Source of the DNA: Chara braunii
Lineage: Eukaryota > Plantae > Charophyceae
Reading direction: 5' to 3'
Length of the DNA: 64,000 nt
NCBI GenBank assembly: GCA_003427395.1
Contig: BFEA01000031.1
Location: forward strand, 1,073,218 to 1,137,217
Shown: one piece after another, positions 11,390 to 57,735 of the stretch
Layout: each line of letters begins with the position of its first letter
Position numbering within the stretch: the stretch's first letter is position 1
The notes under the pieces: model-generated
The model's database searches: none
Told to the model about the DNA's origin: nothing
The model's input: only the letters and a program-made list of their open reading frames with translations
Made by a program: the position numbers and the translations under genes

Positions 11390-11800
11390 AGCCTATACAG
11401 GGGACCCCTGCAAGCATGTTGCCCTGTGCCATTGGGGGAGGTCAGCTAATGACAAGACCAAGCATTTGGCCAGTATCTGCGCCTCCCATCTACTTACCCC
11501 GCCCCCGTACAGTAACAGCAGTGTCTACGGCAAGCTTTCTCCCACACACCACGCACAACCCACCGTTCTTGTCAGGGGTTTGGGCTGGCAGTCTGCTAGG
11601 ATTGCAAGGTTGGTGTGAGTAAAGTCGACCACTTTTCTCTCTCAGGGGTATCACTAACTCTGGGCGATGTGGTGAGTCCTTATCCATCAGTCAAATGCAT
11701 CGGGGTTCAACCTCCTGATGAGTAGGTGAAAGTCCGACGAAACAGTCTGGTACAGTCATGCTTTTTTTTAGTGTATAGCGAATATGACAACACACGCACG
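11390..11800 (+). mobile_element. Hammerhead-bearing short repeat, family A copy 1
   Basis: Homologous to 41548-41918 (CCGTTCTTGTCAGGGGTTTGG, GGTGAGTCCTTATCCATCAGTC, GTGTATAGCGAAYATGACAACACAC); ends in a CA-rich tract. The 5' boundary is approximate. Confidence 0.75.
11699..11749 (+). ncRNA. Type III hammerhead remnant lacking the 5' arm of helix III
   Basis: AUC-GGGG-UUCAA-CCUC-CUGAUGA-GUAGG-UGAAAGU-CCGAC-GAAA-CAGUCUG. Relative to the 41.8 kb copy, 14 nt (GCCTGGGAAGACTG) are deleted upstream. Confidence 0.8.
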
Positions 11801-12303
11801 CCAGTGATGGCCAAAGAACTTACCAATACTGAACAGGGGGAGTAAGTCAACTATCTCAGTTGGTTGGCACCAAGAGTGCCACAGGTGTTGCCGGGATTGA
11901 ACCCACGACCTCCTGAATGCCACTTGCATACATAACAAACTGAGCTAGGCCTTTGCTGCCTCAATGTTGGGACACCCATAAAACCCAACAAAAAAATTGA
12001 AGAAACAATGTTCTACTTTTTATTTGCATTTCGTTGTTTTTCCTGCTTTTCTTTTTTGCAGATAGTACTAGATGCTGGACGCTAGGCCTGGGTGCCTGTA
12101 ATTGTTCTCAACCATTAGAGGAGATCAGATGGCTTGTGGCAGCCCCAAGGACAGTCTCCTCCAGGGGGCGTCATTCGTGAAATCCTTTTTTGTTATCCTA
12201 ATCAGATGGCAAGTCGAGCCCTACAGCTGTGCGACTCAGACCTGTCTCTAGACGTAGACCTACACCAACCCATGCCTTCCAAGGGTCTCAGATGAGTGTT
12301 CCA

Positions 12304-54590: not shown

Positions 54591-57524
54591 TATTATTTTA
54601 TTTATCGATTCATTTATCAATACCTCCACTTCCCACAATTAAGCCGCAATTCTGCATCAGCTGCTGCATCTCAACTCCCCTTTCGCTCTTTTCCCTATTA
54701 AAAGTCGAAACACTTTATCATCCAATAAACCCTTAAAGCTCTACGACACCTTTAGAATTATCCTTCCACCTCCTGTGATTCTGCAGGCTGCATATTTTGA
54801 CCGAAGGTAAGGTTTCCCGCCCACCTTTTTGAGCAAACAGTATTTTTTCCAAATTTGCACTGAAGTCTTTAACTGCCACTTCACTGGATTATAAACCAAG
54901 AAACGCCTCAACGAATGTATGTGCACACGCCCATTAGCCCATTAGCGCGTGCACACTGCAGGACAAGTTTGCAATTTGGGAAACTACTATCACCCAGTGC
55001 CATAGGGATTCATTGGACGTGGTCTAAGATAAAACCAGTAAGGTCACTGCTTCTCCAATCCATGACCGCTGGGGTCGGCTTGGATTCCTGCCATGGCATT
55101 GAAAAAGCCATCAAGGACATCAGATAAGAAAAACACAGCGCTGGGACAAAGAAGAAAAACTGGCAATCCTCCTCCTGCCTCCGGGAGGGGGAAAAAAAAA
55201 AAAAAAAAAAAGTTTAAAGAACGCACTACAAGGTGGGAACCATGGATGGACAGGACTTCATGCAATTCACTGCATACAGCAGACGCTCATCACCAGAGAG
55301 ATGGCTACCACACCCAAGAAAGGCAGCAGGCGCGTAAATTACCTGCAATTCACTGCATAGGGAGGTAATGACAATAAATAACAAAATACTGAACTTGAAA
55401 AAAAAACGAGTATAAAATACAGTGAGACAAGATTTGAAATGTTGATATGTACAGATCCACAATTGCATAAGTGGATTATGATGCCATTACGCGGAGGTAC
55501 TTTCTTTGAGGGCGTACTCACACTAGGACTTTCCTGCATGAATCTGACTGCGATTACGGGCCCAAGCATAGGTGCATCTGACTGTACTTACGTCAAGAGC
55601 TGAATAGAAAAGGTCCCTAGTATGACTATGCCCTGAGACAAGATTGAAGTATCAAGATGAGCAGGAACTCATGGCCCATAAGGCCATTACGCGGATGTCT
55701 CCCAGGTTCAGACGCCGCGTTGTATTCGAGGTGATTGGCATTTGAGAGACTATATTATATATATCTAACCAGTCCGGCTGTTGTATCCCGAAATCTTCTG
55801 CCGCACTCCTTATTACCTCTCCGAGCAACGATTAAGCGTTTCGAGCTATAAGTTCGATTGCTCGTCTCTCAGACTTCAACTAATTCATTTTGGTGCCTCT
55901 TGGATCTGTGCCATGCCTATCTACTGATAGGTATCAGAAAGCAGACCAACAAGATAAACAGATGGATTGATGGATTGGTTGGTTGATTGATTCAGCCCTG
56001 CATTTTAAAGTGGCACAATCCATTCTTTTTTTTTTTTCTTTTTTTTTTTTTGGCACAATCCATTCTAGATCTAAGTTAACAAATTATTTATTCCATTTGA
56101 TGCTGAAACTTCGTTGGCGATGCCTTCTCTCACTCTCTTCCGAGTTCAGAAAGGCAGTGCCAACAAAGTTTCAGCATCAAAAGGCCGCGCCAACAAAAGT
56201 TTCAGCCTCGGTTGCCAAATACTTTTTGGGAGATTGATGCTTTCTTCATTCTTTCCAACCTTGGTACGAGTCATGTCAACGCTTTCTGCTGAACCAATCA
56301 ATCAATCAATCAATCAATCAANNNNNNNNNNNNNNNNNNNNNNNNNNNNNNNNNNNNNNNNNNNNNNNNNNNNNNNNNNNNNNNNNNNNNNNNNNNNNNN
56401 NNNNNNNNNNNNNNNNNNNNNNNNNNNNNNNNNNNNNNNNNNNNNNNNNNNNNNNNNNNNNNNNNNNNNNNNNNNNNNNNNNNNNNNNNNNNNNNNNNNN
56501 NNNNNNNNNNNNNNNNNNNNNNNNNNNNNNNNNNNNNNNNNNNNNNNNNNNNNNNNNNNNNNNNNNNNNNNNNNNNNNNNNNNNNNNNNNNNNNNNNNNN
56601 NNNNNNNNNNNNNNNNNNNNNNNNNNNNNNNNNNNNNNNNNNNNNNNNNNNNNNNNNNNNNNNNNNNNNNNNNNNNNNNNNNNNNNNNNNNNNNNNNNNN
56701 NNNNNNNNNNNNNNNNNNNNNNNNNNNNNNNNNNNNNNNNNNNNNNNNNNNNNNNNNNNNNNNNNNNNNNNNNNNNNNNNNNNNNNNNNNNNNNNNNNNN
56801 NNNNNNNNNNNNNNNNNNNNNNNNNNNNNNNNNNNNNNNNNNNNNNNNNNNNNNNNNNNNNNNNNNNNNNNNNNNNNNNNNNNNNNNNNNNNNNNNNNNN
56901 NNNNNNNNNNNNNNNNNNNNNNNNNNNNNNNNNNNNNNNNNNNNNNNNNNNNNNNNNNNNNNNNNNNNNNNNNNNNNNNNNNNNNNNNNNNNNNNNNNNN
57001 NNNNNNNNNNNNNNNNNNNNNNNNNNNNNNNNNNNNNNNNNNNNNNNNNNNNNNNNNNNNNNNNNNNNNNNNNNNNNNNNNNNNNNNNNNNNNNNNNNNN
57101 NNNNNNNNNNNNNNNNNNNNNNNNNNNNNNNNNNNNNNNNNNNNNNNNNNNNNNNNNNNNNNNNNNNNNNNNNNNNNNNNNNNNNNNNNNNNNNNNNNNN
57201 NNNNNNNNNNNNNNNNNNNNNNNNNNNNNNNNNNNNNNNNNNNNNNNNNNNNNNNNNNNNNNNNNNTCTCTCTCTCTCTCTCTCTCTCTCTCTCTCTCTC
57301 TCTCTCTCTCTCTCTCTCTCTCTCTCTCTCTCTCTCTCTCTCTCTCTGTGTGTGTGAATGAGTCACAAGGGGAGCATGCTTCACAAAGCAGCACCGCTGA
57401 AAGTAGGCAATCTGGTAAAAATGAAGAAAATCGTTTTTTCAAGCGAAAAAAAAATAAAAGAAGACTGTCGATCTAAATCCAAGAGTCAAACAAGAATGAA
57501 TACCACATATATATTGTCACATAT

Positions 57525-57735
57525 ATATCGTCACAAATAGAACTGCCCGGTAAACCGTAGGCAGAGAGAGAGAAGAGGACAACAAACGAGGGGCTGTGAC
57601 AAACTGTTTCGTCGGAGTTTCACCGACTGATCAGGAGGCTGAACCCTCAACAGTCTGCAGAATCCCCTCACTGATTACACTGTAAATGATAATCTACCTT
57701 AACCAAAATCAAAGTAGACTATCACTCACCCACAC
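57525..57735 (-). mobile_element. Hammerhead-bearing short repeat, family B, copy 2
   Basis: Near-colinear with 51275-51460; TA-rich microsatellite on both sides. Confidence 0.75.
57600..57657 (-). ncRNA. Type III hammerhead ribozyme, core G8 changed to C, triplet GUU
   Basis: Minus strand reads CAGACUGU-U-GAGG-GUUCAG-CCUC-CUGAUCA-GUCGG-UGAAACU-CCGAC-GAAA-CAGUUUG; perfect 5-bp helix II. Confidence 0.85.

Follow-up and report, generated by a model that had tools for sequence, protein, structure and literature searches.

Type III Hammerhead Ribozymes in Short Non-coding Repeats of Chara braunii with Penelope-like Insertion Anatomy

Introduction

Retrozymes are split into plant elements with long terminal repeats (LTRs), which carry type III hammerhead ribozymes, and animal elements without LTRs, which carry type I hammerheads and are derived from Penelope-like elements (bioRxiv 10.64898/2026.07.22.740005, and reviews). 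Presented here is a stretch of 64,000 nucleotides (nt) of the charophyte alga Chara braunii (contig BFEA01000031.1, positions 1,073,218 to 1,137,217), referred to as the window, in which four hammerhead motifs are embedded in short dispersed repeats. The evidence makes it likely that these are dead copies of a superfamily of short non-coding retroposons, which have a type III hammerhead in common and are copied in a Penelope-like manner. The same ribozyme of 50 nt is found in three or more families whose bodies are unrelated, and the combination of a type III hammerhead with Penelope-like insertion has not been described before.

For C. braunii, part of the connection between hammerheads and Penelope-like elements has already been published, as canonical hammerheads have been reported in two of its Chlamys lineages, namely Chlamys-2_cBra and PLE-X (Craig et al., 2021; PMC8557442). 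According to the same study, the hallmarks of Penelope-like elements are 5' ends that are often truncated, tandem copies that are only partial (pseudo-LTRs), a truncated copy lying alongside in inverted orientation, and insertion into microsatellites, namely (CA)n and (C)n for Chlamys, with (TA)n as a preferred Penelope-like target. Chlamys elements also yield non-autonomous derivatives with common 3' ends, known in Chlamydomonas (PMC8557442). The hammerhead type is not stated in the main text of that paper and such short families are not described there; among the works searched, the only one that mentions both Chara braunii and hammerheads describes no short non-coding hammerhead family. Concerning type III hammerheads, a survey of plant LTR retrozymes recorded type I motifs in the lycophyte Selaginella and the chlorophyte Chlamydomonas, while Chara was outside the survey (Cervera et al., 2016; PMC4918200).

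Results

Hammerhead Motifs of the Window

A preliminary description of the window had reported four hammerhead motifs, each with a lesion of its own, and re-reading of the sequence confirmed both their positions and their lesions. Coordinates are those of the window:

11700..11749, + strand: copy A, hammerhead remnant (Rfam RF00008, 25 bits)
41860..41883, + strand: copy B, 5' half of a hammerhead (alignment with A; 15-mer match)
51355..51412, - strand: copy C, complete type III hammerhead (RF00008, 40.6 bits; hammerhead as minimum free energy fold)
57600..57657, - strand: copy D, complete type III hammerhead (RF00008, 35 bits; hammerhead fold)

Copy A retains helix I (GGGG/CCUC), CUGAUGA, helix II (GUAGG/CCGAC, with one mismatch), GAAA and the 3' strand of helix III, and its pairwise alignment with copy B showed that a 14-nt deletion in A has removed the 5' strand of helix III. 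Copy B reads AGACUGUC-GGG-UUCAA-CCUC-CUGA and then passes straight to the element tail, keeping GUC and having its 3' half deleted. Copy C bears GUG for GUC (G17 at 51404) and a helix II decayed to GUUGA/CCAAC. Finally, copy D has a GUU cleavage site (U17 at 57649) and a CUGAUCA core, due to a G8 to C change at 57629; the latter is private to this copy, as previously noted, but GUU is the majority state of its family (89% of the DNA depth) and not a private lesion. Each copy fails one hammerhead requirement and, judging from sequence, none of them can cleave, because A and B are deleted, C has G17 and D has the G8 to C change; all four appear to be dead relics. As for the intact copies anticipated earlier, nearly intact ones are found elsewhere in the genome, while those of the window are broken.

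The window contains the 15-mer GGTTCARCCTCCTGA exactly four times, always at a ribozyme site, and this confinement together with the Rfam E-values rules out a chance origin of the motifs. An Rfam scan of the window detected the ribozyme in one polarity only, and all copies are solitary, none of them being accompanied by a second ribozyme. There are six runs of N in the window, none inside or beside a ribozyme; the nearest ones are at 41412, 306 nt before element B, and at 57266, 268 nt from element D, and no conclusion relies on continuity across assembly gaps.

The gathering score of the Rfam model RF00008 (Hammerhead_3) is 48.5 bits. No hammerhead in the window was found at this threshold and the matches emerged in E-value mode only, the E-values referring to the whole window against all families. 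The recommended check with Hammerhead_3 succeeded for C (40.6 bits, E-value = 2.3e-5), D (35 bits, E-value = 8.9e-4) and A (25 bits, E-value = 0.61), although all of them are below threshold and B was unmatched. C, D and A align to the model over its full length (model positions 1-54). The three-way junction is the minimum-energy structure of C and D (z of -3.1 and -2.45, respectively), whereas A and B do not fold in this way. Both the matches and the folds agree with the type III assignment made earlier.

Further evidence came from 214 kb of additional C. braunii DNA (loci L001, L002, L011, L012, L014 etc.), which contains nine more copies. One of them, L014a, represents a third family (fam3) and carries a nearly intact ribozyme with GUC, CUGAUGA and GAAA (RF00008, 40.6 bits). 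The fam2 consensus obtained from reads (fam2 being the family of copies C and D) has the canonical CUGAUGA...GAAA core, a GUCGG/CCGAC helix II, as in D and unlike C, and U17 or C17. Both the consensus and L014a present the features that define a hammerhead, that is the CUGAUGA/GAAA core, A15.1-U16.1 and H17, with loops capping helices I and II and an open helix III. The preliminary description had predicted a core better conserved than its surroundings, and between families the 50-nt ribozyme is indeed 80-88% identical, while the 70-nt flanks on each side are 42-55% identical versus 49 +/- 3% for shuffled sequence. Moreover, 64 DNA contigs share with the second family (fam2, copies C and D) the stretch 51360-51422 alone. 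No variant of the core (CUGAUGA, GAAA) reaches 10% of reads among the table rows listed. Comparison of fam3 with fam2 revealed one C:G to U:A exchange in helix III. In the DNA of fam2, position 17 is U in 89.5% of the depth and C in 9.0%; C17 lies inside a CpG and therefore its decay from C to U is expected.

Thermodynamic modeling of the whole fam2 unit (copy D, 202 nt) predicted a stability of -74.2 kcal/mol (z = -4.27), with none of 200 shuffles as stable, and a fold in which the hammerhead would sit at the tip of an extended stem, beside a 24-bp hairpin. The unit of the first family (fam1, copies A and B) is without unusual structure (z = 0.22).

A separate hammerhead core, GCCUC-CUGAUGAG ... 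CGAAAC, was noticed in locus L011 at 2828-2900 (+). It has a different helix II and possibly a closed helix III, in a type I-like layout, and it was not reported by Rfam at an E-value below 0.5.

Repeat Families and Their Insertion Anatomy

The four motifs were initially regarded as copies of one element, which is not supported: A and B belong to fam1 and C and D to fam2, the bodies are unrelated and the ribozyme alone is common to them. Members of fam1 are about 240 nt long, with a tail ...GAACATGACAAC(AC)n, and thus end in (CA)n, while those of fam2 are about 200 nt long, with a tail ...TTTGTGACGA(TA)n; fam3 occurs in other C. braunii DNA. The elements of the window are:

11563..11800, + strand: fam1 element A, about 238 nt (self-BLAST and alignment with B; CA-rich on both sides)
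41719..41916, + strand: fam1 element B (alignment with A; ends GTGTATAGCGAACATGACAAC(AC)n)
41548..41579, + strand: tail-like fragment ATAGAGAACATGACAAGACACA, with (CA)n immediately before it and B about 140 nt downstream
51281..51713, - strand: fam2 element C, long form (self-comparison and alignment with D)
57534..57735, - strand: fam2 element D, 202 nt (88% identical to C; TA-rich microsatellite on both sides)

Element A has ...GTGTATAGCGAATATGACAAC as its 3' end, with CA-rich sequence behind it and a CA-rich tract in front of the element. A and B are 83% identical over 11563-11699 and align again at the tail (11771-11799), both having the fam1 3' end GTGTATAGCGAAYATGACAAC and then (AC)n. 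The fragment at 41548-41579 matches 41891-41923 with an identity of 88% (self-BLAST) and appears to be an incomplete copy of the fam1 3' end lying upstream of the element. In element C, about 125 nt are duplicated internally in tandem (51465-51580 and 51587-51713). Its 5' end, GGTGTGGGCGA, matches that of D, with GGTGTGGGYGA in common, and the fam2 3' end ...CAGTTCTRTTTG is present in both, D and other copies of the family continuing with TGACGA(TA)n. In fam1 and fam2, the copies are similar from about 135-150 nt ahead of the ribozyme (about 300 nt in the duplicated long form of C) to 50-80 nt past it. Protein searches with a 46-residue open reading frame (ORF) across copy D gave no match, and neither tRNA genes nor tRNA-like heads of short interspersed elements (SINEs) were found in the window.

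Upstream of the ribozyme, the motif CTCAG(A)GGGGTAYCA was observed at 11644-11656 and 41794-41806 in fam1 and at 51510-51525 (-) in the long form of fam2. It includes GGTATCA(G), which we take to be 7-8 nt of the plant tRNA-Met primer-binding site, with the terminal base being wrong here. The motif probably reflects distant common ancestry of the fam1 and fam2 bodies rather than a working primer site.

Among the additional copies, six (L011a, L011b, L014b, L014d, L014e and L002a) are 5'-truncated and begin right after a microsatellite. Specifically, L011a (fam2) begins in helix I after (TA)n and L011b (fam2) in helix II, L014d and L014e (fam2) begin just past the ribozyme, L002a (fam1) begins at CUGAUGA after (CA)n, and L014b (fam1) at G1.1, preceded by CA-rich sequence. 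A head-to-head arrangement is seen in two fam2 pairs, L011a with L011b and L014d with L014e. Head-to-tail joints, connecting 51275/51281 back to 51358-51402, were detected among the RNA reads and also in a small number of DNA contigs, and the tandem joints observed involve 5'-truncated units. No sign of circular RNA emerged from the RNA runs, all of them oligo-dT selected. In the window, the sampled loci and the loose ends of reads, fam1 abuts (CA)n and fam2 abuts (TA)n at both ends. The label "Penelope-like", already proposed in the preliminary description, therefore fits the anatomy in its 5' truncation, partial tandems, inverted pairs and microsatellite targets.

Between L011a and L011b, at L011 32730-33335, an element resembling a miniature inverted-repeat transposable element, with terminal inverted repeats CAGGGTTGTCAGGCCGAACG ... 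CGAACATCGGCAACCCTG, has inserted in the (TA)n at a later time.

Abundance, Transcription and Possible Self-cleavage of fam2

Three oligo-dT RNA runs from one study (X13, X14 and X15) and one DNA run of the same organism were mapped on the fam2 stretch 51200-51590 (391 nt) at 85% likeness. A total of 6,639 DNA contigs match this stretch, mostly 85-99% alike, a contig count that does not equal copy number; unique flanks were without coverage in the DNA run. The expectation of an abundant family of non-coding ribozyme retroelements in an algal genome was thus borne out. The stretch is also transcribed, as thousands of RNA reads match it. The first mate was taken as antisense to the RNA (dUTP-type library, usual in stranded kits), in which case the abundant strand is the ribozyme sense. 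The ratio between strands is 4.5-5.2-fold downstream of the ribozyme (51270-51395) and 1.3-1.7 upstream, a step to which cleavage combined with oligo-dT capture, an internal start site and expressed truncated copies could all contribute.

Sense/antisense ratios of the RNA reads spanning position 17 were as follows:

G17 (inactive): X13 7.6, X14 1.5, X15 5.0
U17: X13 0.98, X14 1.22, X15 1.25
C17: X13 0.16, X14 0.19, X15 0.10

The difference between C17 and U17 is significant in Fisher's test (p from 4e-12 to 2e-32). Hammerheads cleave in the order of preference GUC > GUU >> GUG, and because of this preference surviving sense RNA is expected in the order G17 > U17 > C17. This inverse order is what the reads present, and the gradient at position 17 constitutes moderate evidence for self-cleavage in vivo.

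Surrounding Sequence

Pfam analysis of 48 ORFs from the window and the loci gave domains of Ty3 elements (RT_RNaseH, rve, Chromo, zf-CCHC and a weak RVP_2), exons of a cyclic nucleotide-gated channel (CNGC) and one zf-RVT domain of a long interspersed element (LINE). The larger features of the window are:

1-4052, + strand: Ty3-type LTR remnant 1, with open reverse transcriptase (RT)-RNaseH and integrase/chromodomain ORFs split across frames
23947-28393, - strand: Ty3-type LTR remnant 2, degenerate, with a gag zinc knuckle at 27923-28393, a weak protease match and RT/integrase fragments
51874-52722 and 33734-34552, - strand: plant-type CNGC channel gene, ion-transport exon and cyclic-nucleotide-binding exon, respectively (Pfam)

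The RT-RNaseH-integrase ORF of the first remnant (121-2157) is 86-90% identical to several C. braunii proteins, which are encoded in assembly GCA_003427395.1. The zinc-knuckle ORF of the second (27923-28393, -) was considered as a candidate Chlamys-2 ORF and rejected, being part of the degenerate Ty3 element (tblastn, 23947-25854). The positions of the two CNGC exons place the hammerhead copies B and C in introns of this gene, whose ORF gave no hit in an exact-match search.

A U6 small nuclear RNA (snRNA) match with a 12-nt internal deletion lies in the CNGC intron region at 35975-36062 (+) (48.4 bits, above the Rfam gathering score). Further U2- or U6-like copies are found at L011 32434-32602, where the copy abuts a fam2 tail, and at L012 23338-23450 and 50-157. 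Retro-copies of snRNAs may be common in C. braunii and may originate from the same machinery. A fragment of bacterial-type small subunit rRNA at 43244-43488 (-) (75 bits, model positions 558-872) is probably an organelle-derived insert, and the neighboring 43607-43748 is repeated at 51723-51868, just upstream of the fam2 copy C. In the Ty3-rich region of L001, a fragment of eukaryotic large subunit rRNA is located at 4950-5195 (+) (model positions 2412-2824, 104.9 bits) and a fragment of a group II intron domain at 9519-9596 (-); the former is of interest because relatives of PLE-X in spike mosses target 28S rDNA. Finally, the window contains a tandem array of 34-nt units in at least six copies (60225-60496) and a 236-nt tandem duplication (4543-5014), both unrelated to the hammerhead families.

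Discussion

Comparison with Known Systems

Like metazoan non-LTR retrozymes (Cervera and de la Peña, 2020; bioRxiv 10.64898/2026.07.22.740005), the Chara repeats are short non-coding units (150-400 nt) with one hammerhead each, without LTR, primer-binding site or polypurine tract, occurring in dispersed and tandem copies in a genome that also harbors Penelope-like elements. The fam2 unit is moreover predicted to be highly self-paired, as are the compact RNAs of retrozymes. They differ from them in the ribozyme, which in Chara is of type III with a stable helix III of 8 bp and in the animals of type I with a weak one, in having a streptophyte alga as host, and in the solitary state of the copies of the window. 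A type I hammerhead in every tandem unit, by which non-LTR retrozymes are recognized, is not what we found, the ribozyme here being of type III. Going by the published description, Chlamys-2_cBra and PLE-X belong to the same species and likewise have a hammerhead close to the 3' end, target (CA)n, are truncated at the 5' end and form partial tandems and inverted copies, but the repeats are about 200 nt long and without ORF. Plant LTR retrozymes (Cervera et al., 2016; PMC4918200) resemble them in the type III ribozyme, the green-lineage host and in being non-coding, non-autonomous and transcribed. Their units are nevertheless of 600-1000 nt with LTRs of about 350 bp, compared to about 200 nt in Chara, where microsatellite tails and 5' truncation are seen and both primer-binding site and polypurine tract are lacking. 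As indicated in the preliminary description, the elements therefore match neither the plant LTR-retrozyme class, since they have no LTRs, nor the metazoan type I non-LTR class, since their ribozyme is of type III. In mode of action they would resemble non-LTR retrozymes, or SINEs derived from Penelope-like elements, that are equipped with a stable type III ribozyme, and they are members of neither class.

With respect to RF00008, the family consensus has the canonical core and a GUC/GUU site, but the best copies are sub-threshold (40.6 bits). Exact-pattern scans gave no match in prokaryotic genomes and yielded only phage-type hammerheads in metagenomes and viruses. These type III hammerheads from phages and metagenomes (L004-L010) have the same core, helix II and loop 2 according to a 27-base pattern (GUCGG-UGAAANN-CCGAC), and in L005, L007, L008 and L010 loop 2 is UGAAACU as in copy D, although they have other helices I and III and stand in the context of phage genomes. 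This resemblance may be a convergence on the hammerhead consensus, or a hint of the origin of the module.

Proposed Mechanism and Alternative Explanations

The elements, of about 200-240 nt, would be non-autonomous and copied by target-primed reverse transcription, with enzymes that may be supplied by the hammerhead-bearing Chlamys-type Penelope-like elements of C. braunii. In intact copies the ribozyme would cut the sense transcript after GUC or GUU, freeing a defined 5' end. A parallel would be the metazoan non-LTR retrozymes, derived from Penelope-like 3' ends. The connection to Penelope-like elements is one that we infer from the anatomy and the literature. A further step, which can be advanced only tentatively, is that C. 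braunii harbors an active retrozyme-like system, in which type III units of about 200 nt self-cleave in vivo, may circularise and are copied by Chlamys-type RTs into (CA)n and (TA)n.

Several observations weigh against this interpretation. Neither a Penelope-like RT nor a GIY-YIG ORF was found in the window or in the 214-kb sample (Pfam, 48 ORFs), and the published hammerheads of Penelope-like elements and non-LTR retrozymes are of type I, while those of Chara are of type III. The best copies (C and L014a, both 40.6 bits) score under the Rfam gathering score. Covariation was not significant in the eight alignable copies (2 double-sided changes, with 164 of 500 shuffles as high), in line with the earlier caution on helix II; the motifs are identified by their agreement with the hammerhead consensus and not by covariation. 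Concerning the RNA data, the strand convention is assumed and the three runs come from one study, while the classes at position 17 pool many loci and C17 is linked to fam3 (marker 51408), so that a family-specific orientation of transcription could mimic the depletion of C17. The RNA reads were not reported to have their 5' ends sharply accumulated at the cleavage site, and expressed copies with a truncated 5' end (loose ends at 51375) account for some of the step in the sense strand.

The same repeats could be read as SINE-like elements moved by a LINE-type (non-LTR) RT, the hammerhead being incidental. Variable 5' truncation and 3' microsatellite tails are typical of such elements too, a LINE-type zf-RVT ORF is present in C. 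braunii DNA (L011 28479-29246), no Penelope-like ORF lies near any copy in the window or the sampled loci, and Schistosoma Sm-alpha was reportedly first described as a SINE-like element with a hammerhead. We nonetheless consider this unlikely, given the inverted head-to-head pairs and partial tandems, which are Penelope-like and absent from LINE target-primed reverse transcription (Craig et al., 2021; PMC8557442), and the hammerhead-bearing Chlamys elements documented in the same species (PMC8557442). A more skeptical view would regard the hammerhead as a functionless passenger, a relic acquired by descent or template switching that does not cleave and is dispensable for propagation. All four window copies are inactive, 89% of the fam2 DNA depth is U17 through CpG decay, covariation is lacking in significance, and the majority of Chlamys and Naiad elements have no hammerhead and proliferate nonetheless (Craig et al., 2021; PMC8557442). 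However, the ribozyme is the sole segment conserved across three families, with flanks at random level, its core has no frequent variant among the table rows listed and the position-17 gradient in sense RNA fits active cleavage, making a mere passenger quite improbable.

Plant-type LTR retrozymes, with hammerheads in their LTRs, a tRNA-Met primer-binding site, a polypurine tract, mobilization by Ty3 elements and circular RNAs of 600-1000 nt, would agree with the type III ribozyme, the streptophyte host, the plentiful Ty3 elements and the GGTATCA(G) motif that precedes the ribozyme in fam1 and in long-form fam2. Yet neither LTRs nor 4-bp target-site duplications nor a convincing primer-binding site were seen at the copies examined, where the repeats are of 200-240 nt with a single ribozyme and microsatellite ends; the likeness to the primer-binding site amounts to 7-8 nt with a mismatch at the terminal base, and both 5' truncation and inverted pairs are foreign to LTR elements. 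For the window copies this explanation is largely refuted and we deem it highly improbable. Scarcely any credence can be given to an integrated DNA of an exogenous viroid-like or satellite RNA replicon, that is a retroviroid like the carnation CarSV RNA: the type III hammerhead and the highly structured fam2 unit of about 200 nt would suit it, but the genome holds thousands of diverged copies, which fall into several families, have fixed tails and sit in microsatellites, the hammerhead occurs in one polarity only and expression arises from genomic variants. A superfamily of short retroposons copied in a Penelope-like manner is hence the reading that we prefer.

Conclusion

The four copies of the window are inactive relics and the interest lies in their family. 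As this family falls below the Rfam gathering threshold, standard annotation misses tens of thousands of bases of ribozyme repeats. The short repeats of this charophyte, with a type III ribozyme and Penelope-like anatomy, break the division between type III hammerheads in plant LTR elements and type I hammerheads in animal non-LTR elements. If the active retrozyme-like system tentatively advanced above exists, it would place a type III hammerhead retroelement in streptophyte algae, the group ancestral to land plants, and would form a bridge between plant LTR retrozymes and viroids, with their type III hammerheads, and the animal non-LTR retrozymes that depend on Penelope-like elements. The C. 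braunii repeats can thus serve as a concrete system in which to ask about the origin of the type III hammerheads in land-plant retrozymes and, perhaps, in viroids.

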